64,000 bases of DNA from Macrostomum hystrix (taxonomy: Eukaryota > Animalia > Platyhelminthes): contig CATNEN010000008.1 of the NCBI GenBank assembly GCA_950097015.1, forward strand, positions 2,232,001 to 2,296,000, given 5' to 3'. Of the stretch, positions 3,743-40,000 are shown one piece after another. The notes below the pieces were generated by a model. The model was given only the letters and a program-made list of their open reading frames with translations. It was not told where the DNA came from and ran no database searches. How positions within the stretch are numbered: position 1 is the first letter of the stretch; the number at the start of each line of letters is the position of its first letter. The position numbers were made by a program, and so were the translations under genes.

Positions 3743-5304
3743 TAGGACAGCTATCTCGTCAGTGTACCATGCGGATAAGCAGGAAATTATTCCCATGGTA
3801 CTGTAGGAATAAGACAAAAAATATTTCTACAGTACCATAGGGATAAGCACTGCCTTGATGTGGGGCATGGAGGAATTTTATTTTAGCCCATAGATATGTT
3901 TTCCAGACCCCATATTGCTTGTTGCTAGTTTAATCTAATTTCTCACTGACTGCAACTGAACAGGATGTATAATTAATTTGCCCCAAAAATTTGCCTGAGT
4001 GGCCTAGGGCCTATCTGGTAAATTTAGTATCTGTGTTTATATCTAATCTAACAAACAACTAACATAATGTGTTAAACTTATGGGCCTTAGGAATCTATAA
4101 AATATTAGCCATTTTCATTACCAAAATCATGATGGTAATTCAATAATCAGTTTAAAATTATAAAAAGCTGTAAACTAAGCCCTAGGGATCTGGGATTACC
4201 AACTACTACTTAATTCATAAGTACAGTCAGTAGACAATACACTATATATTATTTGCATCATAATAACATTATAAGCTTACATTAGCAAGAATACTAATAA
4301 CAAATTCCAAATAAAATTTAAAGTTAGGCCTATCTTTTAGCATACTGGCTTTATCATCTTCCATTTTACGCCTTGACTGCATTGCCCAATTTGGTGCGAT
4401 AATAATAATAAACAGTTTTCAGGGAATCGGAAAGGAAAGCAGCCTTTAGTAAAACACACATTAATGAAATATAAAAAACTCGGGGCATTACTATACAATA
4501 CGTTTTATACCTGGTTTAATAGTTTTGTTTTTTATATATTTAATTTTACATCAGTGACACAGCACTTGATATTTAAATTAATTTGTTTCAAGCCATGAGA
4601 TTATAAAATGTTACAAGGAACTATAAGTTATTTAGGATTTGTTTCGTATCAGATCAGATAAGCGACCTTTAAGTAAAGTTTTTTTAGTTCAATTTTCGAG
4701 TTGTATGTCATTTTTAATCATATTTCTCCGTAGGTCTTATTGACGTACTTTTGGCTCGGTAATGTAATCATATATAGTTAGTGGTATTTAAATATATAAA
4801 TAGAGCCGTGTAGCTGCTAAACCCTCTATAAATTCTTGCTGAAATTTAATTGTTAGGCTCTATGGCGCACATCCAGTTGGAATGGCTTTGAATGTTAAAT
4901 GCTCACATGTTATCCTTTCAAAAGTTCTCTAATTGTGGACTGCTTGCATGAACGTAAGGAACCAAACATGCAAATTTAACCGTACTCTATTCAGCGTTCC
5001 TGAAAAGAACCATTCGTCACTTATTATTTTTAATATATTTTATCACTTTTAGTTTTTTTGCTTTATATAAAATGTTCATAAAGTTTTAGTTAAACTACCA
5101 AAGCGAAAACAACAAAGCTGTGGTAAGACTTATTGAGAGACAGACAGTGTGCATGCTTTAGCATTGAGTAGCAAAGAGTAGCTGAAAGGTAAATCTCAAT
5201 AAAAATAATTTATATATTCGATTCCTGTATTCATTTTCCAGCATCACACACCGTCAATCCCAATCGCAATAAGCAGCATCTAACGTTTGGACAAATCCTG
5301 ACGC

Positions 5305-8300
5305 ATGGAAAAGCTACTGCAGAAAGTAAAGCCAGCCGCCGAATATTTCAAAGCCATTGAAACAGGAAGTTTGAAGCTTATCGACACGTTTATAAACCAA
5401 GAAAAAGACATTGATCGTCTCTTTCAGCTTCCTGAACCTGACACCTCTGCCTCTCTGTTGTACTTTGCTGTATCCCTGGGTCAGGCGGCAATTGTAGAGA
5501 GATTGGTGAGGGCTCAAGCTGATGTAAATCTTAAAGCAAGTGATGGCACGTCTCCGCTCTATTTAGCAGCCAAATGTGGCCATCAGCAAGTTGTGAAAGT
5601 ACTTCTTAGAGCCCAGGCAGACTTGGACATCGGAGCGAAATCGTCTGGAGCAACGCCACTGTATGTTGCCTCTTTGAGGGGCCACGAAGAGGTGGCTAGA
5701 ATGTTGATCAGAGCACAAGCCAGTTTAAATATTCAACAAATGCACGGAGCAACACCGCTCTACATTGCTGTTCAGGAAGGTCATATGAAAATTATCGACA
5801 TGCTTATTAATGCCGGAGCCGATGTCAATGTGCAGATAAACTCAGGCGAGTGCGCGTTACACTACGCCTCTCAGTCGAATCTTCGCCAGATAGTAAAAAA
5901 ACTACTCACAGCTCACGCAGATGCCAATCTCCGACAAGACGAGGGCATTTCGCCGCTGATTAGTGCAAGCTTCCTCGGCCACTTCGGCTTGGTGGACCTG
6001 CTACTCAGTGCCGCAGCTGATCCAACGGTTGAGTCTAGAGCCGGTTACACTGCACTGCATCTTGCAGCACAGAATGGGCACTATCGGATTGTGCAAATGC
6101 TTTTGAAAGCTTTGGCCAATATCGATCACCTGGGCCAGCAAGGCTACTCGCCGCTCTACGCCGCGGCTCAGAATGGCCACGCTCAAATTGTCAAAGCGCT
6201 CATTGCCGCCCAGGCGAATGTTAATCTCCAGTCGAGATACGGCGCAACGCCGCTGTACGTTGCCTCGGGCAAGGGAAACAACGAGGTCGTGAAGCTGCTG
6301 CTGGCAGCGCAGACGGACTCGGATGTAAAAGGACACGTTGGCGACTCGCCGGTTTATATAGCATCCCAGATGAACAATCTGCAAGTAGTTCGCACTCTCG
6401 TCAAATCGCAGGCTAATGTTAACACGCAGGCTATAATAGGATTTACTCCGCTTCATATTGCGGCTCAAGAGGGGCACTATGACATTGTTGATGTCCTAGC
6501 GAAAGCTCAGACTGACGCCAATTTGCAGGACTCGTTTGGGTTTACACCGCTCTTCTATTCTTCTCAGAATGGGCATCAGAAAGTTGTTGCGACACTAATC
6601 AGGCAAGCCAATCCTGATGTTAACTTGAAGGGCAACACTGGAGAAACACCGTTGCATGCAGCATGTCAGCTGGGTCATCACGGCATCGCCCAGTTGCTCA
6701 TCAAAGCTCAAGCTGACCTCAACATCCAGCAGCTGCATGGCTGCACGGCAATCTATCTGGCCGTGCAAAACGGCCACGAGAAAGTTGTAGACGCGTTGAT
6801 CAAGGCGCAGGCTGACGCGGACATTCAGCCAGAAAAGTGCAGTCCGCCATTGTACTCTGCAATATTCAATAACCACCGGAGCATAGCCTTGAAGCTCATT
6901 CGAAAAGCGCGAGTTGATTTTGATCAGCGAAGAATGGATGGAGTCGGCGATTCGTCACTTCATTTGGCCGTGCAAGGCAACCATCGTTGGGCGATGACCG
7001 CTCTGTTGAACGCTCAGGCAAATGTGAACATACAAACTACTGCCACTGGTTGGTCGCCACTGCACGTGGCATCGTACAATGGCCGTGAAGGAGCTGTGCT
7101 GGCAATGATTGAAGCCCAGGCCGATGTCGACTTGTTAACGTGGAACGGCGAAGCTCCGCTAACCACGGCACAGCGAAAGGGCCATGATGTTGTGATCAGA
7201 TCCTTGATCAATGCAGGAGCAATCGCGCCACAGGACAATGCTCTTCGGTGCTCTGCTCAGAACAACACGTTAGATACAGCAGACGATGCAGATAAACGAA
7301 ACTTAAGAAGCAATGCGGAAGAGAGTGTCACACTCGATTCTGGGTAAGTAAGCAATGAGTATAGCCAGCTGTACGAGTAAAAACCACTGAGTTACTTTAA
7401 ACTGTAGTTTTCTATACTGAATAAAAGTAGCTAGTTACTTACTACTTCTTTAGACTCGGGTAGGTAGAAGGTAATCATAAAACCAAAAATAAGATACGAG
7501 CGAAAACTCACCAAGCATTAGCATGTCCTATGATTACAGGCTGCCATCAGTCAGTGACATCGAGCTCAGTCGGCGGTTGTGCTCCACCCTTACACGCTCT
7601 GGATTCATTCGTTCAAGGGCTATTCTACAGAGCGCTGTGTCCGATGTTCTGCAACAGATATTGCGACAGAGAGGTGTGAGGCTGTCGCACAATTACATGT
7701 TCATTGTTGGCAGCTACTCAGAAGGCTGGGGAAACAGCTTGTCCTGCGCTGACGGCAAAACAGACGTGGAATCGGACATAGACCTGATGCAACTGTTTAC
7801 TGGCAGGAAGTATCACCTAGGCGATAGTTGCCAATGCGATGCTGTCACTCTGAGCGAAGTTGTTTCATATGACAATGGCCACATCGTGTGTCCCGGGTTT
7901 GGTAAGTACCAGTTTTTTGCACCTCAAAGGCTCTTAGAAGTAGATTTGGTTTCTTCAAAGTGGTTTCGTAGCATCGAAATCAAGCAGAACCATATTTACT
8001 CACCAGGACTGTGAATAAACAAATAAGCTAATTCAACGATTAAAGACAGGCAAAAAACCGATGTAAATATTATAAAAAGGATAACTCATTACAAAATCAG
8101 CTTTGATTTTCAGCTCTTTCAACTCTTCCACTTTGTCCATTTTTTCCAAGCAACTACACGCTCTTAACATAAATTAGAAAACTGTTTTAATTTTTTAGCA
8201 TCCAATGCCGCGAGGGCCTCTGTCGGGTCAATACTAGCCCAGCGACCGGCCGTAGACGAGGTTAGCGCGTGCGAACTATGCTGCTACCCACCTGTTGCGC

Positions 8301-9839
8301 CACTTCAATCAGCCAGAACCGCCTTGTCCAACATTCCCAAGCGAACCCTGCAGACTCTGCAGGAAGTCATCAAATCGCGGGACTGGCCGTGTCATGTTGT
8401 ACACGCGGCGCCACCTGGACAGGGTGGTGTACAACTGAGGGTGAGCACGACATTCCTCGAGAACCGGCTGCTGCGAAGCTTCAGCACAATACAGGGCCAG
8501 GTGTTTGTTACGCTGAAGTATCTGGTGAAGAAGGTGATCGGCAGAAAAGTCAACGGTGTGAAGGCGTACCACGCAAAGACGCTGATGTTCCGCTTGCTGG
8601 AAGAAACCGCGGCAGACCGATGGCAAGCGGACTGTTTGGTGAGCCTCACGAGGCGGGCCCTACTGATGCTCCTGGAAGGAGTGGAGAGCAGCAGCTCTGC
8701 GCCGGATTGCCGAATTCTGACTCACTTTTTCCTTGGCGATGCAGGCCTCTATCTAAAAGGCAATGATCGCAGCGGTGTTGACACTATTTCTCAAGTACTG
8801 AAGGACACAATAGATCAGCTGCCACGTTTGCTGTTGCAATTCGATAGTAGTCTCAAACCGATCGAGCCAAACTCGGGATTTCGTTTTCACCCGTTCCTTG
8901 TGCTGCCACAACAGTACCCGCATAATGTTCCACCACTGGAGACAAAGCCGTTGGAATACCACCAGATCTACGATGTGGTTTGCGAAGTTATGCTACAGCT
9001 CGGCTCGGATGTTAACAGCAACGCTGAACATTTAGCACAGCTTCTCGGTCAACTACCGGACAGGGCCACAAATTCAGCGCGCGAGGCCCTTCGTGCGATG
9101 GTTGGTCTGAAGTTCGGCTTTGTGGGCACTGCGGAACGTATAATGCGCTACTGCGCAGACCACAAGACCGGCCGAGGCATTCCTTGGCCGCCATCTGACA
9201 TTGCTAGCGTCGAAACTGAGGCAACAACGGACTATGTGTGGAAGCACTTGGTCAGTTGCGACTCTGCGTACAAGTTTTGTCTCAGATTCGATCGGAGGCC
9301 AGTATTTAGTTTCCTTCCAAAGTTTATTTGTGATCTCTTCCCAACCGGACTGAACGAGGTTAGCGTGACAAACTACTTTATGAACTTCGACGCTTTGCTC
9401 AGAAGCCTCCAGTTCGAGCTGCTACCGGAGACTGTTCTCAGCGCCACCGCCATCAGCTGGTTCGCCGGGCTTTCTCAACGACAGAGCGGTGATACCGACC
9501 TACAAGAGGTGCTGACCACCCTGCACTACTGCCCAGATGTCCAACTCATTGACCAATTATTGACTAGGCAAGGAGACACAATCTCAGCAGCCATTGCAGC
9601 CGGTTACAGTGAGGCAAGGGCAGAATTGGAACGTTTTCAACAAAACAGACAGGTAAGAAAAAATTATGGAACTATTGGTGCACTAAATCAAAGCGCATCC
9701 GTTTAGAAATGTTCTGTTTGATCACAAAAAACTAATTTAATTTGTTGTTCACTTTCAGGCGGCCGTCATTGCTGACAGCTTGCTGGCAGATCATTTGATG
9801 TTACAACAGCATAAGTCCGACCACCTTATAAGTAGTTAA
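5305..9839 (+). CDS. Ankyrin-repeat / Mab-21-family cGAS-like receptor (cGLR) fusion, ~1311 aa
   Basis: Exons 5305-7343, 7540-7901, 8199-9652, 9759-9839 (GT-AG; phases 2,1,0 all match; 3936 nt). In-frame stop at 5281 upstream of the ATG. 18 ankyrin repeats, then NTase motifs GSYSEG and ESDID, a third Asp in VDEVSACELCCYP, and Mab-21 motifs HVVHA, LRVSTTFLENRLL, TLKYLVKK, KAYHAKTLMF. Confidence 0.9.
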
Positions 9840-9989
9840 GCTTTTTGAAACCATAGCATATTCATTCAAATTTGTAGCAGAAAGCTTAACTTTTGTAAGA
9901 TAAGTTTGATCTTAGCTCCTATCTTTCCGCAGCGCAATTTTCATGCTCTTGTTCATGAACTGAACAAGTTGATGTTCATGAACTGTTTG

Positions 9990-10980
9990 AGCTGGGATCA
10001 GTGGAAACGTATCAAGATGGGTAGCTGGGATCAGTGGAATCGTATCAAGATGGGTAGCTGGGATCAGTGGAATCGTATCAATATAGGTATCTAGGATCAG
10101 TGGAATCGTATCAATATGGTTAGCTGGGATCAGTGAAATCGTATCAAGATGGGTAGCTGGGATAAAGTGGAATCTTATCAAGATGGGTAGCTGGGATCAG
10201 TGAAATCGTATCAAGATGGGTAGCTGGGATCAGTGGAATCGTATCAAGATGGGTAGCTGGGATCAGTGGAATCGTATCAAGATGGGTAGCTGGGATCAGT
10301 GGAATCGAATCAAGATAGGTAGCTGGGATCAGTGGAATCGTATCAAGATGGGTAGCTGGGATCAGTGGAATCGTATCAAGATGGGTAGCTGGGATCAGTG
10401 GAATCGTATCAAGATGGGTAGCTGGGATCAGTGGAATCGAATCAAGATAGGTAGCTGGGATCAGTGGAATCGTATCAAGATGGGTAGCTGGGATCAGTGG
10501 AATCGTATCAAGATGGGTAGCTGGGATCAGTGGAAACGTATCAAGATGGGTAGCTGGGATCAGTGGAATCGTATCAAGATGGGTAGCTGGGATCAGTGGA
10601 ATCGTATCAAGATGGGTAGCTGGGATCAGTGGAATCTTATCAAGATGGGTAGCTGGGATCAGTGGAATCGAATCAAGATAGGTAGCTGGGATCAGTGGAA
10701 TCGTATCAAGATGGGTAGCTGGGATCAGTGGAATCGTATCAAGATGGGTAGCTGGGATCAGTGGAATCTTATCAAGATGGGTAGCTGGGATCAGTGGAAT
10801 CGAATCAAGATAGGTAGCTGGGATCAGTGGAATCGTATCAAGATGGGTAGCTGGGATCAGTGGAATCGAATCAAGATAGGTAGCTGGGATCAGTGGAATC
10901 GTATCAAGATGGGTAGCTGGGATCAGTGGAATCGTATCAAGATGGGTAGCTGGGATCAGTGGAATCGTATCAAGATGGGT
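9990..10980. repeat. 33-bp minisatellite, ~30 copies (AAGATGGGTAGCTGGGATCAGTGGAATCGTATC)
   Basis: Direct tandem periodicity; explains the MGSWDQWNRIK and DTIPLIPATHL ORFs. Confidence 0.97.
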
Positions 10981-11258
10981 GCAAGTCATTATTTCAACTA
11001 AAAGTGTAAGAAATGTAGGAAATTTTTCTTGTTATATAGCTTTTAGCACCGGTATATTACTTAACTGATTCACACTAACTATTTAAGCCTTAGTGAAGTT
11101 TACTGAGCAGCCGTTTTTTAAAACTTTAAATGAACTTAAAAAAACCGTCAATGTACTTTTCGATAACATTTTGTGAAATCACAAAAATATAATTACGAAA
11201 TATTTTCCAGTTTTGTTTTAAATATTTTATCTTTTAAAAGATTGGTGCGATTCTCCTA

Positions 11259-11705
11259 GAATCGGAGAGGGATGGGGATCTGAGAATCGGAGACGGAAGG
11301 GGATCTGAGAATCGGAGAGGGAAGGGATCCGAGAATCGGAGAGGGAAAGGGATCTGAGAATCGGAGAGGGAAGGGGATCTGAGAATCGGAGAGGGAAAGG
11401 GATCTGAGAATCGGAGAGGGAAGGGGATCTGAGAATCGGAGAGGGAAGGGGATCTGAGAATCGGAGACGGAAGGGGATCTGAGAATCGGAGACGGAAGGG
11501 GATCTGAGAATCGGAGACGGAAGGGGATCTGAGAATCGGAGAGGGAAAGGGATCTGAGAAACGGAGAGGGAAGGGGATCTGAGAATTGGAGAGGGAAGGG
11601 GATCTGAGAATCGGAGACGGAAGGGGATCTGAGAATCGGAGAGGGAAGGGGATCTGAGAATCGGAGAGGGAAAGGGATCTGAGAAACGGAGAGGGAAGGG
11701 GATCT
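11259..11705. repeat. 25-bp minisatellite, ~18 copies (GAGAATCGGAGAGGGAAGGGGATCT)
   Basis: GATCT recurs at 11401, 11426, 11451. Confidence 0.96.
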
Positions 11706-12313
11706 GGAATTTTTCGAGCAAACCTAAACGAAACTGGGATCAATTTATTAGAATTGAGACGGGGATCTGAAGGGGATACAGTTCAGGGGATGCTGATTTA
11801 AGAAACTCCGTAAGGAATATTTTAAGGAGATTGTAAAAGCAGATAAAATTGACAATCTGTACAGTAATTGTATCGCAAAATACTGGACCACGCTGACGGC
11901 AACCAATTCGTGAAAATGATCCAGATTTTATTTATATTGCCATTTGCGAAATTAAAAAGTCTCGACATACAGTGGAACAATTAAAACAAAAAGCAGATTA
12001 AATACAAATAATCACAGAATGAGGATAACAACACTCGATAAACGGATATTCGCGGTATTAACAACACAGCGACTGTTGACATTCAGCTAACAAGCATACT
12101 AGAATGGCGAAATTAATTATTGTAACACTAATAGGTATATTGCAAAATCTGATTTGTTAACAAAAACACACGAGCATTTATGCAACAAGAGTGGTCCAAC
12201 ATGAGCAATTGTGCATAAACTGACTTGAAACTGGAAACAAATTAGTAAAAATCCTGGATCTCCTAGAAAACTAAATAATTTGAAACTTCTCAATCATAAG
12301 AAGTGTAGATGAT

Positions 12314-15300
12314 GGGATCAGAGGTGAAATGGGATTCTAATCGATTTGGGGATCAGAGGTGGAATGGGATTCTAATCGATTTGGGGATCAGAGGTGAAAT
12401 GGGATTCTAATCGGATTGGGGATCAGAGGTGAAATGGGATTCTAATCGGATTGGGGATCAGAGGTGAAATGGGATTCTAATCTGTTTGGGGATCAGAGGT
12501 GAAATGGGATTCTAATCGGATTGGGGATCAGAGGTGAAATGGGATTCTAATCTGTTTGGGGATCAGAGGTGAAATGGGATTCTAATCGGATTGGGGATCA
12601 GAGGTGAAATGGGATTCTAATCTGTTTGGGGATCAGAGGTGAAATGGGATTCTAATCTGTTTGGGGATCAGAGGTGAAATGGGATTCTAATCGGATTGGG
12701 GATCAGAGGTGGAATGGGATTCTAATCTGTTTGGGGATCAGAGGTGAAATGGGATTCTAATCTGTTTGGGGATCAGAGGTGAAATGGGATTCTAATCTGT
12801 TTGGGGATCAGAGGTGAAATGGGATTCTAATCTGTTTGGGGATCAGAGGTGAAATGGGATTCTAATCGGATTGGGGATCAGAGGTGAAATGGGATTCTAA
12901 TCGGATTGGGGATCAGAGGTGAAATGGGATTCTAATCAGTTTGGGGATCAGAGGTGAAATGGGATTCTAATCTGTTTGGGGATCAGAGGTGAAATGGGAT
13001 TCTAATCGGATTGGGGATCAGAGGTGAAATGGGATTCTAATCGGATTGGGGATCAGAGGTGAAATGGGATTCTAATCTGTTTGGGGATCAGAGGTGAAAT
13101 GGGATTCTAATCGGATTGGGGATCAGAGGTGAAATGGGATTCTAATCTGTTTGGGGATCAGAGGTGAAATGGGATTCTAATCTGTTTGGGGATCAGAGGT
13201 GAAATGGGATTCTAATCTGTTTGGGGATCAGAGGTGAAATGGGATTCTAATCTGTTTGGGGATCAGAGGTGAAATGGGATTCTAATCTGTTTGGGGATCA
13301 GAGGTGAAATGGGATTCTAATCGGATTGGGGATCAGAGGTGAAATGGGATTCTAATCGGATTGGGGATCAGAGGTGAAATGGGATTCTAATCGGATTGGG
13401 GATCAGAGGTGGAATGGGATTCTAATCAGTTTGGGGATCAGAGGTGAAATGGGATTCTAATCTGTTTGGGGATCAGAGGTGAAATGGGATTCTAATCTGT
13501 TTGGGGATCAGAGGTGAAATGGGATTCTAATCGGATTGGGGATCAGAGGTGAAATGGGATTCTAATCTGTTTGGGGATCAGAGGTGAAATGGGATTCTAA
13601 TCGGATTGGGGATCAGAGGTGAAATGGGATTCTAATCTGTTTGGGGATCAGAGGTGAAATGGGATTCTAATCTGTTTGGGGATCAGAGGTGAAATGGGAT
13701 TCTAATCTGTTTGGGGATCAGAGGTGAAATGGGATTCTAATCTGTTTGGGGATCAGAGGTGAAATGGGATTCTAATCGGATTGGGGATCAGAGGTGAAAT
13801 GGGATTCTAATCGGATTGGGGATCAGAGGTGAAATGGGATTCTAATCAGTTTGGGGATCAGAGGTGAAATGGGATTCTAATCTGTTTGGGGATCAGAGGT
13901 GAAATGGGATTCTAATCGGATTGGGGATCAGAGGTGAAATGGGATTCTAATCGGATTGGGGATCAGAGGTGAAATGGGATTCTAATCTGTTTGGGGATCA
14001 GAGGTGAAATGGGATTCTAATCGGATTGGGGATCAGAGGTGAAATGGGATTCTAATCTGTTTGGGGATCAGAGGTGAAATGGGATTCTAATCTGTTTGGG
14101 GATCAGAGGTGAAATGGGATTCTAATCTGTTTGGGGATCAGAGGTGAAATGGGATTCTAATCTGTTTGGGGATCAGAGGTGAGATGGGATTCTAATCGGA
14201 TTGGGGATCAGAGGTGAAATGGGATTCTAATCTGTTTGGGGATCAGAGGTGAAATGGGATTCTAATCTGTTTGGGGATCAGAGGTGAAATGGGATTCTAA
14301 TCTGTTTGGGGATCAGAGGTGAAATGGGATTCTAATCTGTTTGGGGATCAGAGGTGAAATGGGATTCTAATCGGATTGGGGATCAGAGGTGAAATGGGAT
14401 TCTAATCGGATTGGGGATAAGAGGTGAAATGGGATTCTAATCGGTTTGGGGATCAGAGGTGAAATGGGATTCTAATCTGTTTGGGGATCAGAGGTGAAAT
14501 GGGATTCTAATCAGTTTGGGGATCAGAGGTGAAATGGGATTCTAATCAGTTTGGGGATCAGAGGTGAAATGGGATTCTAATCTGTTTGGGGATCAGAGGT
14601 GAAATGGGATTCTAATCTGTTTGGGGATCAGAGGTGAAATGGGATTCTAATCTGTTTGGGGATCAGAGGTGAAATGGGATTCTAATCGGATTGGGGATCA
14701 GAGGTGAAATGGGATTCTAATCGGATTGGGGATCAGAGGTGAAATGGGATTCTAATCGGATTGGGGATAAGAGGTGAAATGGGATTCTAATCTGTTTGGG
14801 GATCAGAGGTGAAATGGGATTCTAATCGGTTTGGGGATCAGAGGTGAAATGGGATTCTAATCTGTTTGGGGATCAGAGGTGAAATGGGATTCTAATCGGT
14901 TTGGGGATCAGAGGTGAAATGGGATTCTAATCTGTTTGGGGATCAGAGGTGAAATGGGATTCTAATCGGTTTGGGGATCAGAGGTGAAATGGGATTCTAA
15001 TCGGTTTGGGGATCAGAGGTGAAATGGGATTCTAATCAGTTTGGGGATCAGAGGTGAAATGGGATTCTAATCTGTTTGGGGATCAGAGGTGAAATGGGAT
15101 TCTAATCTGTTTGGGGATCAGAGGTGAAATGGGATTCTAATCTGTTTGGGGATCAGAGGTGAAATGGGATTCTAATCTGTTTGGGGATCAGAGGTGAAAT
15201 GGGATTCTAATCTGTTTGGGGATCAGAGGTGAAATGGGATTCTAATCTGTTTGGGGATCAGAGGTGAAATGGGATTCTAATCGGATTGGGGATCAGAGGT

Positions 15301-16313
15301 GAAATGGGATTCTAATCGGATTGGGGATAAGAGGTGAAATGGGATTCTAATCGGTTTGGGGATCAGAGGTGAAATGGGATTCTAATCGGTTTGGGGATCA
15401 GAGGTGAAATGGGATTCTAATCTGTTTGGGGATCAGAGGTGAAATGGGATTCTAATCGGTTTGGGGATCAGAGGTGAAATGGGATTCTAATCTGTTTGGG
15501 GATCAGAGGTGAAATGGGATTCTAATCGGTTTGGGGATCAGAGGTGAAATGGGATTCTAATCGGTTTGGGGATCAGAGGTGAAATGGGATTCTAATCAGT
15601 TTGGGGATCAGAGGTGAAATGGGATTCTAATCTGTTTGGGGATCAGAGGTGAAATGGGATTCTAATCTGTTTGGGGATCAGAGGTGAAATGGGATTCTAA
15701 TCTGTTTGGGGATCAGAGGTGAAATGGGATTCTAATCAGTTTGGGGATCAGAGGTGAAATGGGATTCTAATCTGTTTGGGGATCAGAGGTGAAATGGGAT
15801 TCTAATCTGTTTGGGGATCAGAGGTGAAATGGGATTCTAATCGGATTGGGGATCAGAGGTGAAATGGGATTCTAATCGGATTGGGGATAAGAGGTGAAAT
15901 GGGATTCTAATCGGATTGGGGATCAGAGGTGAAATGGGATTCTAATCGGATTGGGGATAAGAGGTGAAATGGGATTCTAATCTGTTTGGGGATCAGAGGT
16001 GAAATGGGATTCTAATCGGTTTGGGGATCAGAGGTGAAATGGGATTCTAATCTGTTTGGGGATCAGAGGTGAAATGGGATTCTAATCGGTTTGGGGATCA
16101 GAGGTGAAATGGGATTCTAATCTGTTTGGGGATCAGAGGTGAAATGGGATTCTAATCGGTTTGGGGATCAGAGGTGAAATGGGATTCTAATCGGTTTGGG
16201 GATCAGAGGTGAAATGGGATTCTAATCAGTTTGGGGATCAGAGGTGAAATGGGATTCTAATCTGTTTGGGGATCAGAGGTGAAATGGGATTCTAATCGGA
16301 TTGGGGATCAGAG
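12314..16313. repeat. 35-bp satellite array, ~114 copies (GATCAGAGGTGAAATGGGATTCTAATC[TGT/GGA/AGT/GGT]TTGGG)
   Basis: Highly homogeneous 35-bp period; variation is nearly confined to one 3-nt site. Confidence 0.98.
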
Positions 16314-25810: not shown

Positions 25811-28800
25811 ATGGCCAATCAGCAGCAACAGCAGCAGCAGGTTAGCTCGCTGATGCAGGACGGAGCGAAGTGTCTTCGATGGGAAGAGGTAAGTGCGAAA
25901 TACCTCAATGAGTCCCAAATGATAGAAACTTGTGCAAAGACAGCCTTCAGCTGTTCAGTCCACGGACTGGTGGGGTAGCCACACTCCTGCTAATGCTCGC
26001 ACTGATCTATTAATAGTCACTAAGCACTGAAAGTGTTAATTAGCAGTTTACTTCACAGACTAAAAATAGAATTTAGTTTGCAGGTGGATTGAGTCATTTT
26101 TCAAAAATCCTTTCGTTTTCCGTCGTTTCAAGTAGAAGCTCACGATAAATAATTGATTGTTGCACCAAACTGTCCCTGATTAATTACTCAATGAGGTGAA
26201 GCAAAAATGGCCAGAAAAAACTCTGCCGATTTCGCAGGACTCAACTATGCCGCGAGCTGTGACTCTTAAAGTGGACTCAAAAGCGTACCTGCTGTTCTGG
26301 CAGGAGTTGAACGGGGTGAGCTCATGAAATTTGTACTAGTCACAAATTATTTTTATTTTTCATTTTCAGACATGCCCTAAGTTAAAAAAATTCGTAATCT
26401 AAAAGAAATCAACGCGTTTCCCAGAAATCACAATTTCCAAGAAATCACAATTTCCAAGAAATCACAATTTCCAAGAAATCACAATTTCCAAGAAATCACA
26501 ATTTCCAAGAAATCGCAATTGCCAAGAAATCACTATTTCCAAGAAATCACTATTTCCAAGAAATCACTATTTCCAAGAAATCACTATTGCCAAGAAATCA
26601 CAATTTCCAAGAAATCACAATTTCCAAGAAATCGCAATTGCCAAGAAATCACTATTTCCAAGAAATCACTATTTCCAAGAAATCACTATTGCCAAGAAAT
26701 CACTATTTCCAAGAAATCACTATTTTCAAGAAATCACTATTGCCAAGAAATCACTATTTCCAAGAAATCATTGTTTCATAGAAATCCCAGAAATTTTCCG
26801 AACCCCCAAATTCTGTTATCTAATGAATTTTCTGAAATCCCAAGTCCCCAGAAACCCCAAAGCCCCAGAAAGCCAATATTTTTAGAACTGCCACGTTCTC
26901 TAAAATCCCAAATTCCCTGAAAACCTGTAAATCTCGGACATCTTAAATTCCTAGAAATCCCAAATTTCCCTAAATCTTCTGTACTCAGAAATGCCACAAT
27001 TATATCCTATCTCAAATTGTTGCAAATCAGCAATTAGCCTGACATCGTATTCTTAGAAATCGGATCTCCATATCTCTCCAGCAATGAAGATATGAAAACA
27101 GCAGCAAATAAAAGTGCATCTCTAAATCTCTCGACCCGCTCAGGACACCGACTTCATGGAGATCGCGCGCATCAGGGACACCAGAGTGGGCCGGGGTGCT
27201 CGAGTGCCAAAGGTGAGCTTTTTCACAAACGTCGAGTTATAGTACTCATGCTCAAATTATTACGTAGACAAAAAAAATTCAAAACAAATTGGCTGATTAC
27301 CTTGCATTAGCCTCCCCACAGCTCCAACCTCCCTGCCCGCCTGTCACCTTTATAGCCAAAGCAAAAAATGAAATTGAAGCGATGAGGACTCCCACACTAG
27401 CTTGAGTAGACTGCTCGGTGAGGGATGGATGAGAGAGAGGTGGGCGAAGAGGATAAGAGTTGCAACAACAGGAATTAGCATTTTTCCCACTGCAAAGAAT
27501 GCTAATCGCGCGGACGTAGCGAGAGACAGGAGCGGCTAAGGAGGATCAGCGAGATGGAAACACAATGTTAGCTACTGCATATTATTTTGCAGTCAGAATA
27601 TGCACCTGCTCTGAGCATGCACTCACTGTCCTTAACCCTAATTATTCTTTTCTTACCCTCCTAGCCCGCAAAACATTTGCCTTTGTTGCCGCCTACAGAT
27701 ATGGAAAGGAGTAGACACAGGAGTGAGTAGATACGGGAGTGAGTAGATACGGGAGTGAGTAGACACAGGAGTTAGTAGACACGGGAGTGAGTAGACACGG
27801 GAGGGAGTAGACACGGGAGTGAGTAGACACGGGAGGGAGTAGACACGGGAGGGAGTAGACACGGGAGTGAGTAGACACAGGAGTGAGTAGACACGGGAGT
27901 GAGTAGATACGGGAGTGAGTAGATACGGGAGTGAGTAGACACAGGAGTTAGTAGACACGGGAGTGAGTAGACACGGGAGGGAGTAGACACGGGAGTGAGT
28001 AGACACGGGAGGGAGTAGACACGGGAGGGAGTAGACACGGGAGTGAGTAGACACAGGAGTGAGTAGACACGGGAGTGAGTAGATACGGGAGTGAGTAGAC
28101 ACAGGAGTGAGTAGACACGGGAGTGAGTAGACACGGGAGTGAGTAGACACGGGAGTGAGTAGATACGGGAGTGAGTAGACACGGGAGTGAGTAGACACGG
28201 AAGGGAGTAGACACGGGAGTGAGTAGACACGGGAGGTAGTAGACACGGGAGTGAGTAGACACGGGAGGTAGTAGACAAGGGAGTGAGTAGACACGGAAGG
28301 GAGTAGACACGGGAGTGAGTAGACACGGGAGGTAGTAGACACGGGAGGTAGTAGACACGGGAGTGAGTAGACACGGGAGTGAGTAGATACGGGAGTGAGT
28401 AGATACGGGAGTGAGTAGACACGGGAGTGAGTAGACACGCGAGTGAGTAGATACAGGAGTGAGTAGACACGGGAGTGAGTAGACACGGGAGTGAGTAGAC
28501 ACGGGAGTTAGTAGACACGGGAGTGAGTAGACACGGGAGTGAGTAGACACGGGAGTGAGTAGACACAGGAGTTAGTAGACACGGGAGTTAGTAGACACGG
28601 GAGTGAGTAGACACGGGAGTGAGTAGACACGGAAGTGAGTAGACACGGGAGTGAGTAGACACGGGAGTGAGTAGACACGGGAGTGAGTAGACACGGGAGT
28701 GAGTAGACACGGGAGTGAGTAGACACGGGAGGGAGTAGACACGGGAGTGAGTAGACACGGGAGTGAGTAGATACGGGAGTGAGTAGACACGGGAGTGAGT

Positions 28801-30605
28801 AGACACGGGAGTGAGTAGACACGGGAGTGAGTAGATACGGGAGTGAGTAGATACGGGAGTGAGTAGACACGGGAGTGAGTAGACACGGGAGTGAGTAGAC
28901 ACAGAAGTGAGTAGACACGGGAGTAAGTAGACACGGGAGGGAGTAGACACGAGAGGTAGTAGACACGGGAGTGAGTAGACACGGGAGTGAGTAGATACGG
29001 GAGTGAGTAGACACGGGAGTGAGTAGACACGGGAGTGAGTAGACACGAGAGGTAGTAGACACGGGAGTGAGTAGTCACGGGAGGGAGTAGACACGGGAGG
29101 TAGTAGACACGGGAGTGAGTAGACACGAAAGTGAGTAGACACGGGAGTGAGTAGACACGGGAGGGAGTAGACACGGGAGATAGTAGACACGGGAGGGAGT
29201 AGACACGGGAGATAGTAGACACGGGAGGTAGTAGACACGGGAGGGAGTAGACACGGGAGGGAGTAGACACGGGAGGTAGTAGACACGGGAGTGAGTAGAC
29301 ACGGGAGTGAGTAGACACGAAAGTGAGTAGACACGGGAGTGAGTAGACACGGGAGTGAGTAGACACGGAAGGGAGTAGACACGGGCTGTTAGTCAGAAAG
29401 AACAAAGGCTAGTTAATTCTTAGAGTGAAGGAGATCAAGAAATGGCAAGTAAGTGATGTGTCCGGGCAGATAAGAAAGCACATCGAGTATCTTAATGCAT
29501 GCATCCTTTGTCATTCTACCTACATTGGTTCAGACAAAATGCTGGGTTGCTTTTTAGTTTGGAAGAAGAAAAATAGTGTCAATTAGCAGCAGCAGCAGGC
29601 TGTGAGGCAAAAAGCGTCGCACAGCGTGCCAATGTACCCGTCAATCAAATGCAGCTCAGCCACAACACAGTTAGTTATAAAAGGATCTACCAGCATGTTT
29701 GCTTCACAAGCCCGTGCAAATCGGACTCTCTTTACTTTGGCATTTTTTTAAATATCCATGGGATGTCAGGAGAGTCCATTGGATGTCAAGAGAGTCCATG
29801 GGATGTCAGGAGAGTCCATGGGATGTCAGGATAGTCTATGGGATGTCAGAATAGTCTATGGGATGTCAGGAGAGTCCATTGGATTTCTCAAGTGATTCCT
29901 AACCGAAACTGACAAACAAAGGAGCCGAAGCTGCGAGAATTCTGCGCCCAATTCGGATCGGCTTTGGATTATCCCCTAGAGGACAGGTGCTTCTCAGTGG
30001 TCTGGGGCGCCGACCTTGTCAACCTGCAGTGGATCAACTTTGTGGCTTTGAATAGGGAGACTGCGCAGGTGAGTTGTGCCTGTCTGTCCGTCTGTCTGTC
30101 TGCCTGTCTGTCTGTCTGTCCGTCTGTCCGTCTGTCTGTCTGTCTTTCTGTCTGCCTGTCTGTCTGTCTGTCCGTCTGTCCGTCTGTCTGTCTGTCTGTC
30201 TGTCTGTCTTTCTGTCTGCCTGTCTGTCTGTCCGTCTGTCCGTCTGTCTGTCTGTCTTTCTGTCTGCCTGTCTGTCTGTCTGTCCGTCTGTCCGTCTGTC
30301 TGTCTGTCTTTCCGTCTGTCTGTCTGTCTTTCTGTCTGTCTGTCTGTCTGTCCGTCTGTCCGTCTGTCTGTCTGTCTGTCTGTCCGTCTGTCCGTCTGTC
30401 TGTCTGTCTGTCTTTCTGTCTGTCTGTCTGTCTGTCCGTCTGTCCGTCTGTCCGTCTGTCTGTCCGTCTGTCCGTCTGTCTGTCTGTCTTTCTGTCTGTC
30501 TGTCTGTCTGTCCGTCTGTCCGTCTGTCCGTCTGTCTGTCTGTCTTTCTGTCTGTCTGTCTGTCTGTCCGTCTGTCCGTCTGTCTGTCCGTCTGTCCGTC
30601 TGTCC

Positions 30606-30655
<50 letters not shown>

Positions 30656-30977
30656 CCGTCTGTCCGTCTGTCCGTCCGTCTGTCCGTCTGTCCGTCTGTC
30701 TGTCTGTCTGTCTGTCTGTCTTTCTGTCTGTCTGTCTGTCTGTCCGTCTGTCCGTCTGTCTGTCTGTCTGTCTGTCCGTCTGTCCGTCTGTCTGTCTGTC
30801 TGTCTTTCTGTCTGTCTGTCTGTCTGTCCGTCTGTCCGTCTGTCCGTCTGTCTGTCCGTCTGTCCGTCTGTCTGTCTGTCTTTCTGTCTGTCTGTCTGTC
30901 TGTCCGTCTGTCCGTCTGTCCGTCTGTCTGTCTGTCTTTCTGTCTGTCTGTCTGTCTGTCCGTCTGTCCGTCTGTCC

Positions 30978-31027
<50 letters not shown>

Positions 31028-34000
31028 CCGTCTGTCCGTCTGTCTGGGTGTCTGTCTGTCTGTCAGTCTGTCTGTCAGTTCTGGGTGTCTGTCTGTCAGT
31101 CTGTCTGTCAGTTCTGGGTGTCTGTCTGTCAGTCTGTCTGTCAGTTCTGGGTATCTGTCTGTCAGTCTGTCTGTCTGTCTGTCTGGTCTGTCTGTCTGTC
31201 TGTCTGTCTGGTCTGTCTGTCTGTCTGTCTGTCTGTCCGCCAGTCAGTGCCAGCCATCAAGTCGGCCTCCCTGAACCGCACCCTCAGCACTGGAGCCAGG
31301 AGCTGTTCTCCCATGCAACGAGCACGCTGGCGTTGAATCCCTGTTTCTCGGACCTGCTGGAGCGAGCTTGGATCCGCCTGACAGTCTGCAGCCAGCCCGA
31401 TGGCACGATCCCCGTCAAGAGGTTGGCGGCTTCAGATTGAAAAACTTGTGGGGGGAGTCTTCGTTTTCGACCAAAGTTATCCCAATCATAAGAAACTAAA
31501 TTTTTCAAAAGTTCACGGGAGAAAATTCAATAATTTTTCAGCATCCTCAAGCTGTTTGCCGCGCAGAAGGACGACAAGAAGAGGGTGGAGACAGCCCTGG
31601 CCACCTGCCAACTTCTGTCAGCAACAAAGGTGAGGAGGACTTTCTCAGTTTTGTTCCCTGTTTTCAGTTGAATTCTGTAAAAAATCCCATCCTTGATCTG
31701 TGAAAATCTAGCCCGACTGCGTTGAAGCAAAGCTGCTGACCTTTGACGCTTTTCTGGGATTTCACGCGCGACTGTTCCCAAGACAGGACATTGACAGGAT
31801 CTGCGTGGAGCTGTGAGAGCCTGTCATGCTTGATTAGCTATCTGTACTTACTGCTCTTGGCATCTCGCTCCTTCCCTCCCCTCTCCCTCCCTCCTCTCTC
31901 TCCTTCTCCCTCTCCTCTTCTCTTCTCTGTCTCCCCCTTCCTCTCAGCCGTCCTCTCCCTCTTTTCTCTCTCCCCTTCTCTCCCCTTCTCTCCCCTTCTC
32001 CTCCCTCCTCTCGCTTAACACTCCTCTTCCCTTCACCTCCTCTCTCTGTCCCCATTTCTTCCACCCCATCTCTCCCTCTCCCTCAGTAAATCAAAGCAAA
32101 GAAGGCCTGAAAACCCATTATAAATCTCCGTCCTCAGCAATCCCGGCTGTCAGTCCGAGCCAAACTATCACCTGACCCGGGCTCAGTTCACGCGCCTGTT
32201 AAACGATCGCCAACGCGACCCAAGACTTAACGAGATCCTGCATCCGTATTGCAACGAAGCCAAGGCTCGCGAAGTTATTCAACGATTTGAGCCGGATCCT
32301 GCATTCGCAGAGCTCGGTAGGATTCCTGACGATGATAATTTGCTGATTGGCGGGCTGAATGGGATGGGCGGCAGATTAATGGGGTGGTTGTCTAGAAGCC
32401 TGATTGGCTAGACTTCCTCCAATCTATTCAGACCGAATCAGCAGTCGCGGACTGCATGCGTTTCTAACTTCCACCGAGAGTCGCCCGCTGCCATCGGAGA
32501 AGCTGGACATTGGACAGGACATGGAACAGCCGCTGGCGCACTATTTCATCAATTCATCGCACAACACCTACTTGTCAGGTTAGGCAACCTACAACCATCC
32601 TCACACAAGCCCCACTCCGCACATACACAAGGAATTTTGCACCAACTTCACACCCTCCCCACTACGCACAGTCCAACACCTATTTCTACCAAACTTCGCA
32701 CCCTCCCTACACTGCAGAGTCCACACCCCTTTCGCCAACTTCGCACCCTCCCCACTCCGCAGAGTCCACACCCCTTCCCGCTAACTTCGCAACCTCCCCA
32801 CTCCGCAGAGTCCACACCCCTTCCCGCTAACTTCGCACCCTCCCCACTCCGCAGAGTCCAACACCCCTTCCCGCTAACTTTGCACCCTACCCACTCCGCA
32901 GAGTCCAACACCCCTTCCCGCTAACTTCGCACCCTCCCCACTCCGTAGAGCCCAACACCCCTTCCCGCTAACTTTGCACCCTCCCCACTCCGCAGAGTCC
33001 AACACCTATTTCTACCAAACTTCGCACCCTCCCTACTCAGCAGAGTCCACACCCCTTCCCGCCAACTTCGAACCCTCCCCACCCCACACATCCCCACTCC
33101 ACACATTCCTCCTCAGGCCACCAGCTGACCGGCCGCAGCTCCGCAGAGTTGTACCGCCAGGTACTGCTGACAGGCTGTCGCTGCCTTGAGCTAGACTGCT
33201 GGGACGGCCACGGCGCAGATGAGGAGCCGGTGATCACACATGGATACACAATGTGCAGCGAGGTGTCCTTCAGGGTGAGCAGGATTTATTTTGATCTCCG
33301 AATTCTTCAAAAAATTTCCGTGAGAAAATATTTGACTCGGAAACCTTTTTCAATCTGCCTCTAGGAGACAATGGAAGCAATAGCGGAGGCAGCATTCAAA
33401 GTGTCCGACTATCCGGTTATCTTGTCCTTCGAAAATCACTGCTCGTGAGTGCTTTCAATTAAAAAATATAATCAGAGCTGAATCAAACAATGATCAGCCA
33501 ATATTCTCCCCGCCTATTGACTCAGACCAAAGCAGCAGGTGAAGATGGTCCAACTGCTCAAGGAATATCTGGGCGAAAAAATACTCACTCACGAATTGGA
33601 GTCAAATCCAGTAAGACAGACGGTGCAAATCTTAATTGTGAATCAATAGCATCAATAAAAAAATACGAGTAATTTCACTAACTTTTATACCCTCTTGTAT
33701 TGTGAAATTTCAGCTAAAGTCAGGAGTACCACTGCCAAGCCCGGAACAGCTGAGGGGTCGCTTCCTCATCAAGAATAAGAAGCGACACTTCAAAAAGTCG
33801 GGTGGGTTCGATTTCGGACCCACTCAACCTCTCTGACCCACTCAACCTCTCTCTGACCCACTCAACCTCTCTGACCCACTCTACCTCTCTCTGACCCACT
33901 CTACCTCTCTCTAACCCACTCAACCTCTCTCTGACCCACTCTACCTCTCTCTGACCCACTCTACCTCTCTCTGACCCACTCAACCTCTCTCTGACCCACT

Positions 34001-37000: not shown

Positions 37001-40000
37001 ACCCGCCACCTCACTCCACATCAGCCACCTCACTCCACACCCGCCACCTCACTCCACACCCGCCACCTCACTCCACATCAGCCACCTCACTCCACACCCG
37101 CCACCTCACTCCACATCAGCCACCTCACTCCACATCAGCCACCTCACTCCACACCCGCCACCTCACTCCACATCAGCCACCTCACTCCACACCCGCCACC
37201 TCACTCCACACCCGACACCTCACTCCGCATCAGACACCTCACTCCACACCGCAACCTCACTACAGCGCAACCTCAGTCCACACCTACCACCTCACGGGGC
37301 ATCTTAAACATCTCTCCAATATAAAACACTCGCAGATTTAACAAGCGCCAGATCAGTCGCATATATCCGAAAGGAACTCGAGTCGATTCCAGCAACTTCA
37401 TGCCGCAGCTGTTCTGGAACTGCGGCTGCCAGCTGGTGGCGTTGAACTTTCAGACTCTCGGTGAGTGTGACCTGCCCTCCTGCTTTATATTTCTTTGGGC
37501 ATAAGAATGCGGGCAAAAAATCCATTACCTAACCTTCCATCGATTGGCAGACATAAACCTTTCCCTATGATTGTCAAGTTTAAATTGTATAAGACTTCTT
37601 TTTTCGCAAGCAATATCCTGAAAACCTCATTAAATCCTTGATTAAACGGCTAAAATTGCAATTTAATTTTAATAGCTTCATAACATTAGTTTAGCTTAGA
37701 TGGGTGCTGAAAGAATGAAAATATGAAAAAACGAATTTGGTTCGCGCTAGTAATTTTGGATCTAAAGTCATAAAGGCGAAGTTCACTTATTCTATCCTGG
37801 CTGTCCTGGCAAACTTACTTGGCCATCCAAGTACACTTACAATCTCATTCAAAATCCGCCACCTCACTCTATACCGCCACCATACTCCATACCCGCCACC
37901 TCACTCCACACCCACCACCTCACTTTACACCCAGCATTCTAATCCACACCCGCCACCTCACTCTACACCTGCCACCTCACCCCACACCCGACATCTCACT
38001 CAAACCCGCCACTTGAATCCACGCCCGCCACCTCACTCCACATCTACCACCTCACTCCACATCCGCCACCTCTCTCTAAACCACACCCTCACTTTAACCC
38101 ACCATCTCACTCCACACCCACCACCCAATTTCACACCTGTATACCTTCACACCTCGTACTTATAGTTTAAACTTCGTTAAAGTTTTCATAATTATTGACA
38201 TGATAAATTATACGAATTTTGCTGCAGCTCTTAATCTTTTGAAATCTTTTAAAGTTCTTTTTAAATAAAGCGTAATTTGGAAAACTAAACAAAGGATAAA
38301 GGAGTGCAGACTGCCACTGTTTCACAATTAGTCGTTAGGCTAGTCAGGCAATCTTGGTCAGGGTGGCAATGTCAGCGAAGTCGGGACAGCAGCCTAGATT
38401 GCGGCAGCGCAGCCAGCCAAGACGGGCTAGAAGGTCGCTGGTGAACCATTCGGCTTGACGATGCTGCAGCTGCTGCTGCTGTTGCAGCTGCTGACGTGAG
38501 GTCATTGTGTGCCTGATAAACTCGTCCGGATTAGAGAACTCCGAGTCCAGCACGTCACGCAGGAAGGCAATGTAGCCAATGGCCAGTCGCAGGGTGTCAA
38601 TCTTTGACAGCCGCCTCTCGTAGGGAAATGTTGGGATGTGATTGCGCAATTCTTCAAAAGCCGAATTGATGCTGAACATGCGCTTGCGCTCGCGGTAGCA
38701 GGCGCGCTCCTTCGGCACCTCCTCCTCGGCCGCTGGACCGCACGGATCCGGGCCGTTCGCGCCTTTGAGAGTGACGGATTCGAGAGTGACGGATTCGAGA
38801 GTGATGGATTCGAAAGTGACGGATTCAAAGGTGATGGATTCGAGAGTGACGGATTCGAGAGTGATGGATTCGAGAGTGATGGATTCGAGAGTGATGGATT
38901 CGAAAGTGACGGATTCGAGAGTGATGGATTCGAGAGTGATGGATTCGAAAGTGACGGATTCAAAGGTGATGGATTCGAGAGTGACGGATTCGAGAGTGAT
39001 GGATTCGAGAGTGACGGATTCGAGAGTGATGGATTCGAGAGTGACGTATTCGAGAGTGACGGATTCGAGAGTGATGGATTCGAGAGTGATGGATTCGAAA
39101 GTGACGTATTCGAGAGTGATGGATTCGAGAGTGATGGATTCGAGAGTGATGGATTCGAAAGTGACGGATTCGAGAGTGATGGATTCGAGAGTGATGGATT
39201 CGAAAGTGACGGATTCAAAGGTGATGGATTCGAGAGTGACGGATTCGAGAGTGATGGATTCGAGAGTGACGGATTCGAGAGTGATGGATTCGAGAGTGAC
39301 GTATTCGAGAGTGACGGATTCGAGAGTGATGGATTCGAGAGTGATGGATTCGAAAGTGACGGATTCAAAGGTGAAGGATTCGAAAGTGACGGATCCGAGA
39401 GTGACGGATTCGAGAGTGACGGATTCGAGAGTGACGGATTCGAGAGTGACGGGTTTTGAGAGTGACGGGATTTGAGAGTGACGGGTTTTGAAAGTGACGG
39501 ATTTGAGAGTGACGTATTCGAAAGTGACGGATTCAAAGGTGAAGGATTCGAAAGTGATGGATCGGAGAGTGACGGATTCGAAAGTGATGGATTGGAGAGT
39601 GACGGATTCGAAAGTGACGGATCCGAGAGTGACGGATTCGAAAGTGATGGATTGGAGAGTGACGGATTCGAAAGTGACGGATTCGAGAGTGATGGATTCG
39701 AAAGTGATGGATTCGAGAGTGATGGATTCGAGAGTGACGGATTCGAAAGTGATGGATTCGAGAGTGATGGATTCGAGAGTGATGGATTCGAGAGTGATGG
39801 ATTCGAGAGTGATGGATTCGAGAGTGATGGATTCGAGAGTGATGGATTCGAGAGTGACGGATTCGAGAGTGATGGATTCGAGAGTGACGGATTCGAGAGT
39901 GATGGATTCGAGAGTGACGGATTCGAGAGTGATGGATTCGAGAGTGATGGATTCGAGAGTGAAGGATTCGAGAGTGATGGATTCGAGAGTGATGGATTCG

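Follow-up and report, generated by a model that had tools for sequence, protein, structure and literature searches.

Positions 5305 to 9839 (plus strand) of the window, the whole 64,000-nucleotide stretch of Macrostomum hystrix DNA analysed here, hold an intact gene which is trans-spliced and transcribed as a single mRNA with four coding exons. The encoded protein of 1311 amino acids is very probably a member of the ANK-cGLR family, in which an ankyrin array is followed by an acidic linker, a Mab-21/cGAS-fold nucleotidyltransferase (NTase) and a helical C-terminal domain. The reading of the locus as a whole, an intact and expressed ANK-cGLR gene with a product that would act as a cytosolic sensor enzyme, is considered likely. 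The gene is one paralogue of a large Macrostomum expansion of cGAS-like receptors, apparently restricted to that genus.

Exon 1 (5305-7343) carries codons 1 to 679 plus two nucleotides and encodes a 47-residue N-terminus, the 18 ankyrin repeats and the acidic linker. Exon 2 (7540-7901) encodes the helix at the N-terminus of the NTase core together with its first strands, and contains G737-S738, D759 and D761. The first part of exon 3 (8199-8935) supplies the remaining core with D820 and then the Mab-21_C helical lobe, the second part (8936-9652) the family-specific C-terminal domain of ~240 amino acids, and exon 4 (9759-9839) the final 26 codons and a TAA stop. The three introns, 7344-7539 (196 nt), 7902-8198 (297 nt) and 9653-9758 (106 nt), are all of the GT..AG type, with donors GTAAGT, GTAAGT and GTAAGA respectively, and all three acceptors have a pyrimidine-rich tract with AG at its end. 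All of these features lie on the plus strand. The joined coding sequence of 3936 nt translates to 1311 amino acids and its sole stop is terminal. The first-pass annotation had proposed four exons joining in frame through GT-AG sites into this protein, and the boundaries are exactly as it gave them; its description of the gene as hidden across three ORFs refers merely to an ordinary exon-intron organisation. The locus lies in a satellite-rich region. A tblastn search with the spliced 1311-residue protein found no second copy of the gene within the 64-kb window.

The RNA check proposed for the junctions 7343/7540, 7901/8199 and 9652/9759 was positive, as all three were found exactly in assembled contigs of three public RNA runs (X2, X3 and X4) and the introns were skipped in each. 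One contig per run was unbroken over 5241-7342, 7539-7900 and 8198-8353. Read depth of the gene in the RNA runs was 11 to 48 and the transcript extends past 9900 as a 3' UTR. At the other end, the trans-splice acceptor (AG at 5240-5241) and the 5' UTR occupy 5240-5304 on the plus strand, with loose contig ends at 5241 in X2 and X3. Upstream of 5241 the contigs carry, instead of genomic sequence, 23 to 24 nt of the Macrostomum spliced leader, a string that agrees letter for letter with the 3' end of the leader published for M. lignano (PMC5173321). Given that a contig spans the spliced leader, the ankyrin exon and the Mab-21 exons, these must be parts of one mRNA. Separate mRNAs for the ANK and Mab-21 parts, named beforehand as an outcome that would count against the fusion, are thus not what was seen, single contigs bridging both parts. 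The intron 2 joint is also read through by M. lignano proteins (GHIxCxGF/ASNPA, the slash marking the joint). Given the spliced RNA and the co-linear homologues, the 680-aa and 460-aa ORFs are far beyond chance.

The ankyrin array in exon 1 gave strong Pfam matches (Ank_2, E 7.7e-122; Ank, E 1.7e-106 over 16 matched stretches). With a period of ~33 residues, 18 repeats can be counted from about residue 48 to about residue 640, so that the number claimed N-terminal to the Mab-21 part stands, and the protein has tandem 33-residue ANK repeats by both Pfam and period count. The linker which follows is acidic (pI 4.2). It had been suggested that the array replaces the usual nucleic-acid-binding surface. 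This was rejected as unsupported because the Mab-21 core is complete and mildly basic, with a pI of 8.75 and a net charge of +6 (family median pI 7.8, range 5.4-9.7), and the array is joined to its N-terminal side as an extra part.

The Mab-21 part was less readily detected by HMMER. The Mab-21_C helical lobe (PF20266; about 8504-8782, plus strand) scored 21.9 bits (E 2e-4), just below the cut-off of 24.1, the homologues giving 20 to 26 bits. The Pfam NTase model PF03281 did not match in the separate exon pieces or in the Mab-21 regions of the homologues. The domain check by HMMER therefore bore out the ankyrin repeats and gave only the sub-threshold Mab-21_C for the Mab-21 part. A profile of the family searched against the PDB matched cGLR1 (8gjy) with E 1.3e-6 and cGAS with E ~2e-4, and the weakest of its Mab-21 matches was MAB21L1 (E 0.06). 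The fold was modelled with AF2 on the M. lignano homologue UniRef A0A1I8IF24 (P0017) rather than on the window's own spliced protein, the two being 59.5% identical overall and 68% identical over the modelled Mab-21 to C-terminal region. The Mab-21 region of the P0017 model had a pLDDT of 88.6, and the best 50 Foldseek matches listed were all cGAS or Cv-cGLR1. In VIA-align the model superposed on mouse cGAS with Z 17.7 (3.4 A over 243 residues) and on Cv-cGLR1 with Z 16.9, the aligned part spanning model residues 17-314. The homologue's model thus has the bilobed cGAS/Mab-21 nucleotidyltransferase fold, and on this model the NTase core of the 1311-residue protein is of the predicted cGAS/cGLR fold, in agreement with the Mab-21-fold nucleotidyltransferase of the first-pass annotation.

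The catalytic residues, which had been read from GSYSEG, DID and the Asp of VDEV, are all present and conserved across the paralogues. On the plus strand, G737-S738 of the GS loop are encoded at 7709-7714, the two Asp of DID, D759 and D761, at 7775-7777 and 7781-7783, all in exon 2, and the third acidic residue, D820 of VDEV, at 8255-8257 in exon 3. Among 43 family members the Gly is found in all 43, the Ser in 42, D759 in 42 and D761 in 40, and the D820 column is Asp in 38; some of these paralogues have diverged to about 25-30% identity yet keep the catalytic positions. The protein therefore carries h-G-[GS], [DE]-h-[DE] and a third acidic residue, and the loss of acidic residues of the MAB21L1/2 type was not seen. 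In the P0017 model the GS comes after strand 57-61, and strand 84-98 starts with the two Asp residues. D820 aligns with the Asp of canonical bivalve-like relatives, one named as an oyster protein, which have the arrangement GS-x10-13-DxD; the GS-to-DxD spacing is 20 residues here as against about 10-13 in those relatives. A profile of the N-lobe alone found neither cGAS nor OAS among PDB sequences, just noise near E 1. The placement of D759, D761 and D820 in the active site is for this reason a prediction based on the motif, on the secondary structure predicted for the model and on superposition of the whole domain.

A conserved domain of ~240 amino acids at the C-terminus was overlooked in the first-pass annotation, leaving its account of the domain content incomplete. 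It is mostly helical with two short strands, is conserved within the family and was modelled by AF2 from the window's own sequence with a pLDDT of 93.6. It has no Pfam family. Foldseek found no match for it in the PDB (best E 0.18), while the wide VIA-align search of the PDB (Z <=7.5) and the search of the ESM Atlas (TM <=0.50) returned background helical-repeat similarity alone. In the AFDB clusters the convincing matches bear A0A1I8 or A0A267 accessions, prefixes that M. lignano proteins also carry; the other matches there are weak, some of them named Mab-21-like and with bivalve-type accessions.

The strong relatives of the protein are all from M. lignano and mostly have the ANK plus Mab-21 layout. 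Together with the spliced leader at the 5' end, they mark the host as a free-living flatworm of the Macrostomum type. P0017 (1145 aa) is co-linear with the window protein across residues 50-1306, and no protein more than ~68% identical to the latter was found. When eight long homologues were scanned with Pfam, seven had strong ankyrin matches and five of those seven also a sub-threshold Mab-21_C. The M. lignano ANK_REP_REGION/Mab-21 proteins (for example A0A1I8IF24, PAA54193.1 and PAA93879.1) are likewise built of an ankyrin array, a Mab-21 core and the C-terminal domain, and share the motifs GSxxEGWGNSL...SDID and RPAxD with the window protein. They are of another species and paralogue and differ in ankyrin number and in length (about 1100-1400 aa, maximum 3379 aa). 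The cGLR survey of Li et al. 2023 described ANK-cGLR fusions and listed PAA-prefixed proteins, which we take to be from M. lignano, with Ank domains. Since this large flatworm family was already in that survey, the window gene is of a known kind and not a new architecture; its novelty had been overrated and the result is one of annotation level, within an already catalogued family. The 140-enzyme screen in the same study included five cloned M. lignano members (cGLRs #89-93: PAA86972.1, PAA45980.1, PAA57558.1, PAA93208.1 and PAA68676.1) and labelled 15 enzymes as active, none of them these five. They are more distant paralogues with the same family motifs and C-terminal domain, and their constructs apparently start at the Mab-21 region, judging by the first residues given in Table S3 of Li et al. 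2023.

Outside the flatworms the nearest sequence relatives are bivalve cGLRs such as Crassostrea virginica Cv-cGLR1 (PDB 8gjw), which has the same fold and shares GSxxEG and D..(A/S)..C..(W/Y)P but has the shorter GS-DxD spacing already described. Cv-cGLR1 is activated by dsRNA and its product is 2'3'-cUA. Vertebrate cGAS has the same bilobed Mab-21 NTase fold, with about 21% identity over the 243 residues aligned to the P0017 model, and the catalytic GS and three acidic residues. The cGAS catalytic-domain structures that were matched have neither an ankyrin array nor the extra C-terminal domain, and the core of the window protein is less basic than that of vertebrate cGAS. We know of no biochemical work on the fused form of an ANK-cGLR from another animal. 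Such proteins, for example that of Stylophora pistillata (Li et al. 2023, Fig. 1C/4C), also join an ankyrin module to a cGLR core but are of an independent lineage.

Macrostomum is an early-branching flatworm genus and is experimentally tractable. To our knowledge most flatworms, planarians and parasitic groups included, are reported to be without cGLRs and STING; Macrostomum, unlike these, has dozens of ANK-fused cGLR paralogues. Nothing specific on STING or cGAS in Macrostomum was found in the literature. Many of the M. lignano database entries are partial, whereas the window gene provides a full-length, fully RNA-supported model for one paralogue, and it draws attention to two features, the extended GS-DxD loop and the conserved C-terminal domain without a structural match. 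Should the family prove active, it could lead to a cGLR ligand that is not a nucleic acid, or to a read-out independent of STING.

Judged by its sequence, the 1311-residue protein may well be an active enzyme. A ligand would lift an inactive state, upon which the NTase core would make a nucleotide second messenger, and the ankyrin array, the C-terminal domain or both could serve in ligand recognition, autoinhibition or partner binding. Such a signalling-enzyme mechanism is on balance favoured, with slightly less confidence than the reading of the locus as a whole. Alternatively, the Mab-21 domain could be a scaffold without enzymatic function, comparable to MAB21L1/2 or MiD49/51; the NTase fold would then have been retained for binding and the protein would work as an adaptor built on its ankyrin repeats. 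The five screened M. lignano relatives without an activity label (Li et al. 2023), the unusual 20-residue spacing and the lack of detection by the Pfam NTase model are consistent with this. A scaffold would not need the GS and three acidic residues, however, and these persist in 38-43 of the 43 divergent paralogues; the profile ranks cGLR1 and cGAS, with E 1e-6 to 1e-4, above MAB21L1, and Mab21L1-like proteins were described by Li et al. 2023 as being without a predicted functional active site. A scaffold role is considered unlikely. Somewhat less likely still is an active nucleotidyltransferase working outside the cyclic-dinucleotide/STING pathway. Its product might be linear 2'-5' oligonucleotides, as with OAS, or something else that is read by a receptor peculiar to flatworms; that receptor could be the protein's own C-terminal domain or a partner bound to the ankyrin array. 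The planarian S. mediterranea is reported to have neither cGAS nor STING, the active-site loop is longer here and the extra C-terminal domain matches no known fold, all of which would suit such an enzyme, but by both structure and profile the nearest relatives are cGAS and the cGLRs. A further proposal, doubtful to the same degree, is that the Macrostomum ANK-cGLR-C-domain family is a lineage-specific form of pattern recognition, in which a polymorphic ankyrin array would sense protein rather than nucleic-acid ligands and the lengthened loop and C-terminal domain would link that recognition to a nucleotide signal for a non-STING receptor. Such an arrangement would account for the core-only constructs not being labelled active with dsDNA or dsRNA.

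The preferred reading of an intact, expressed gene has also to be set against one in which this paralogue is decaying or dispensable and is turning into a pseudogene. In the X3 and X4 contigs a C>T change at 5425 converts codon 41 from CAG to a TAG stop, so there may be a null allele in some individuals, and the satellite-rich surroundings would also fit decay. Against this, the frame of 1311 codons is open in the window's own copy as well as in the X2 contig, the splice sites are all intact, the gene is transcribed at the depth given above and the differences in the catalytic part are mostly synonymous; decay is considered very improbable. Where the window and the RNA contigs differ, the polymorphisms amount to six synonymous and two non-synonymous in the Mab-21/C-terminal part and to four synonymous and seven non-synonymous in the ANK part. 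One other apparent joint, 6589/6694 (CG..AG, 104 nt, with a 24-nt side), was rejected as a splice, being non-canonical, frame-shifting and found in a separate contig of low depth, and is most likely a paralogous ankyrin repeat.

The ankyrin and Mab-21 parts of this gene are carried on one mRNA. Three long open reading frames lie at the locus on the forward strand (5305–7347, 7523–8014 and 8324–9706). Exon 1 ends at 7343 with GTAAGT directly 3' of it, exon 2 (7540–7901) is preceded by ...TTACAG and followed by GTAAGT, exon 3 (8199–9652) is preceded by ...TTTTTTAG and followed by GTAAGA, and exon 4 (9759–9839) is preceded by ...CTTTCAG and ends in TAA. Spliced together, the four exons give 3936 nt or 1311 codons with the sole stop at the end. 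The boundaries proposed in the first-pass annotation are exact when read from the sequence. A tblastn search of the window with the spliced product found no second copy of the gene.

Four sequencing runs containing gene sequence were aligned over 4700–9900. Runs X2, X3 and X4, dated 2020, gave contigs 99.5% identical to the window in which exactly the three introns, with GT..AG ends, were skipped, matching the predicted junctions 7343/7540, 7901/8199 and 9652/9759. A first type of contig, one per run and 2487–2644 nt long, is unbroken over 5241–7342, 7539–7900 and 8198–8253/8353. A second type, 1604–1617 nt long, covers ∼8315–9649 and then runs from 9756 into the 3' UTR; the break between the two types coincides with a polymorphic bubble (8254, 8283, 8314). 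Since single contigs of the first type span all three of their segments, the ankyrin and Mab-21 exons are on one shared transcript, the opposite of separate mRNAs for the two parts. The M. lignano proteins are continuous where the ankyrin part meets Mab-21 and also where exon 2 meets exon 3 (GHIxCxGF|ASNPA at the latter), thus the splice model is independently supported. A 104 nt skip at 6589–6694 in a low-depth contig (X3, X4) was rejected as a splice as its ends are non-canonical, CG..AG, and it shifts the frame; this contig most likely originates from a paralogous ankyrin repeat.

In the X2 and X3 contigs, the 23–24 nt upstream of 5241 are non-genomic and read ...TGCGAAGACTCAATTTATTGCAT, with the G of the genome next. 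The trans-spliced leader published for Macrostomum lignano ends in these same letters at its 3' side (PMC5173321) and the mRNA is therefore trans-spliced at the AG at 5240–5241. Judged by the leader, the runs appear to be RNA data and the host a Macrostomum-type flatworm. The terminal ATG of the leader starts an upstream reading frame of 14 codons which closes before the true start codon at 5305.

Exon 1 gave very strong ankyrin matches in Pfam (Ank_2, E 7.7e-122) and a count of the 33-residue period placed 18 repeats in the stretch from residue ∼48 to ∼640, in agreement with the N-terminal array of 18 originally described. An acidic linker, pI 4.2, follows the repeats. Comparison of the window with the RNA contigs showed 4 synonymous and 7 non-synonymous differences in the ankyrin part and 6 synonymous and 2 non-synonymous differences in the Mab-21 and C-terminal part. 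A variable recognition module joined to a constrained enzyme would fit these differences, the counts being too small for a test. One of the differences in the ankyrin part is at 5425, where the window and the X2 contig have C and the X3 and X4 contigs have T, changing codon 41 from CAG (Gln41) to TAG upstream of the first ankyrin repeat; this may be a segregating null (nonsense) allele.

The Mab-21 core is recognised weakly by Pfam, with exon 3 matching Mab-21_C at E 2e-4 and 21.9 bits, slightly below the 24.1 cut-off, and exon 2 by itself having no Pfam match. A word-indexed search with exon 3 found 15 proteins, all 15 from M. lignano, at 40–67% identity, and an exhaustive search of representatives found 115 clusters at the 50% identity level, of which 79 had an E value no higher than 1e-10. 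All six strong matches checked for organism were M. lignano; one weak match was an oyster protein and three had no name. A strong ankyrin array lay N-terminal of the matched region in seven of the eight long homologues scanned, and five of these seven also had a borderline Mab-21_C match. A stretch of 41 nt, 7696–7736, encoding the GSYSEGWGNSL loop, is the only matching part of several other contigs of 1.5–3.6 kb which diverge beyond it; these come from other family members expressed in those samples.

The fold was modelled on a M. lignano homologue, P0017 (A0A1I8IF24, 1145 aa), which is co-linear with spliced residues 50–1306 at 59.5% identity. The part from Mab-21 to the C-terminus, 68% identical to the window, was modelled with a 44-row family alignment, A1, giving pLDDT 88.6 and pTM 0.88. 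Among the best 50 matches listed by Foldseek against the PDB, all were cGAS or Cv-cGLR1 at probability 1.00. VIA-align matched model residues 17–314 to mouse cGAS (Z 17.7, 243 residues, 3.4 Å, 21% identity) and to Cv-cGLR1 (Z 16.9). The A1 profile searched against PDB sequences found cGLR1 8gjy at E 1.3e-6 and many cGAS chains at ∼2e-4 to 8e-4, with MAB21L1 weaker at E 0.06.

The candidate catalytic residues of the window protein are G737-S738, D759, D761 and D820. The GS loop and three acidic residues of the first-pass annotation are thus present, and they are conserved in 43, 42, 42, 40 and 38, respectively, of 43 family rows, some of which have just 25–30% identity to the reference. In the P0017 model GS follows strand 57–61, two Asp are at the start of strand 84–98 and the third is within strand 144–153, as would be expected of a Pol-beta-type nucleotidyltransferase. 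Under the family HMM, D820 lines up with the Asp found in outgroup proteins of more canonical type, one from oyster. These outgroup proteins have GS-x10-13-DxD, whereas the spacing in the window protein is 20, with an insertion of ∼8 residues. We infer that the three Asp sit in the catalytic centre; a profile of the N-lobe only had no cGAS match by sequence. That deep paralogues keep the catalytic residues favours an enzymatic mechanism over a scaffold role of the Mab21L1 type.

One His, two Cys and a further His are also near-invariant across the family (H90, C97, C147 and H185 of family alignment A3; by homology ∼H765, C778, C828 and ∼H866 in the window protein). The Cys of the '(A/S)..C..(W/Y)P' motif and the 'CH.V' motif are present in bivalve cGLR sequences (Li et al., Table S3, PMC9980059). 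This set may be a structural metal site.

The superposition with cGAS stops at model residue 314 and the further ∼250 residues form a separate domain (spliced residues ∼1047–1285; 8936–9652, forward strand), overlooked in a domain layout that was otherwise right about the ankyrin array and Mab-21 core. Modelled from the window's own sequence with alignment A2, it reached pLDDT 93.6 and is mainly helical, with a pair of short strands. No Pfam family covers it, Foldseek gave no match in the PDB (best E 0.18), and its likeness to helical repeats was at background level (VIA-align Z 7.5 or less; ESM Atlas TM 0.50 or less). Significant matches among AFDB clusters had M. lignano-type accessions (A0A1I8..., A0A267...), the organism being judged by prefix; the others were weak, some Mab-21-like by name with bivalve-type accessions.

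With a full ankyrin exon and Mab-21 exons on one mRNA and a cGAS/cGLR fold in the P0017 model, the original interpretation is borne out in part: its reading as an ankyrin-bearing cGLR holds, and the locus is securely one of the paralogues in the Macrostomum ANK-cGLR expansion, full-length and expressed. The accompanying proposal, in which the array stands in for the nucleic-acid surface, found no support: the core is complete with a pI of 8.75 (family median 7.8). In Li et al. 2023 (PMC9980059), TPR or ankyrin modules are described on some cGLRs, and Table S2 includes Ank_2 proteins whose accessions begin with PAA, presumably from M. lignano given the prefix of its GenBank proteins. The 140 cloned enzymes of Table S3 include five M. 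lignano cGLRs, #89–93, for which the active-enzyme column is blank (PMC9980059); these five have the motifs of the ANK-cGLR family. The locus is an added paralogue of a family already known and not a new type. Its importance would grow only if the family senses a new class of ligand or signals without STING. The planarian S. mediterranea lacks both cGAS and STING according to a 2026 study (PMC13563047), and no paper on STING in Macrostomum was found in the literature.

Minisatellites lie downstream of the gene, a 33-nt unit in 30 copies immediately so (9990–10980), then 25-nt × 18 (11258–11710) and 35-nt × 114 (12314–16313). This region, 9990–16313, has strong GC skew and spurious repeat reading frames on both strands. 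Further on, 26400–60500 is largely short-period tandem repeat, including 16-nt × 105 (27709–29385), CTGT × 288 (30080–31237), 15-nt × 114 (38767–40479) and 15-nt × 130 (58500–60445), and its long reading frames (e.g. 38344–40524 and 57625–60465, minus strand) are probably repeat artefacts.
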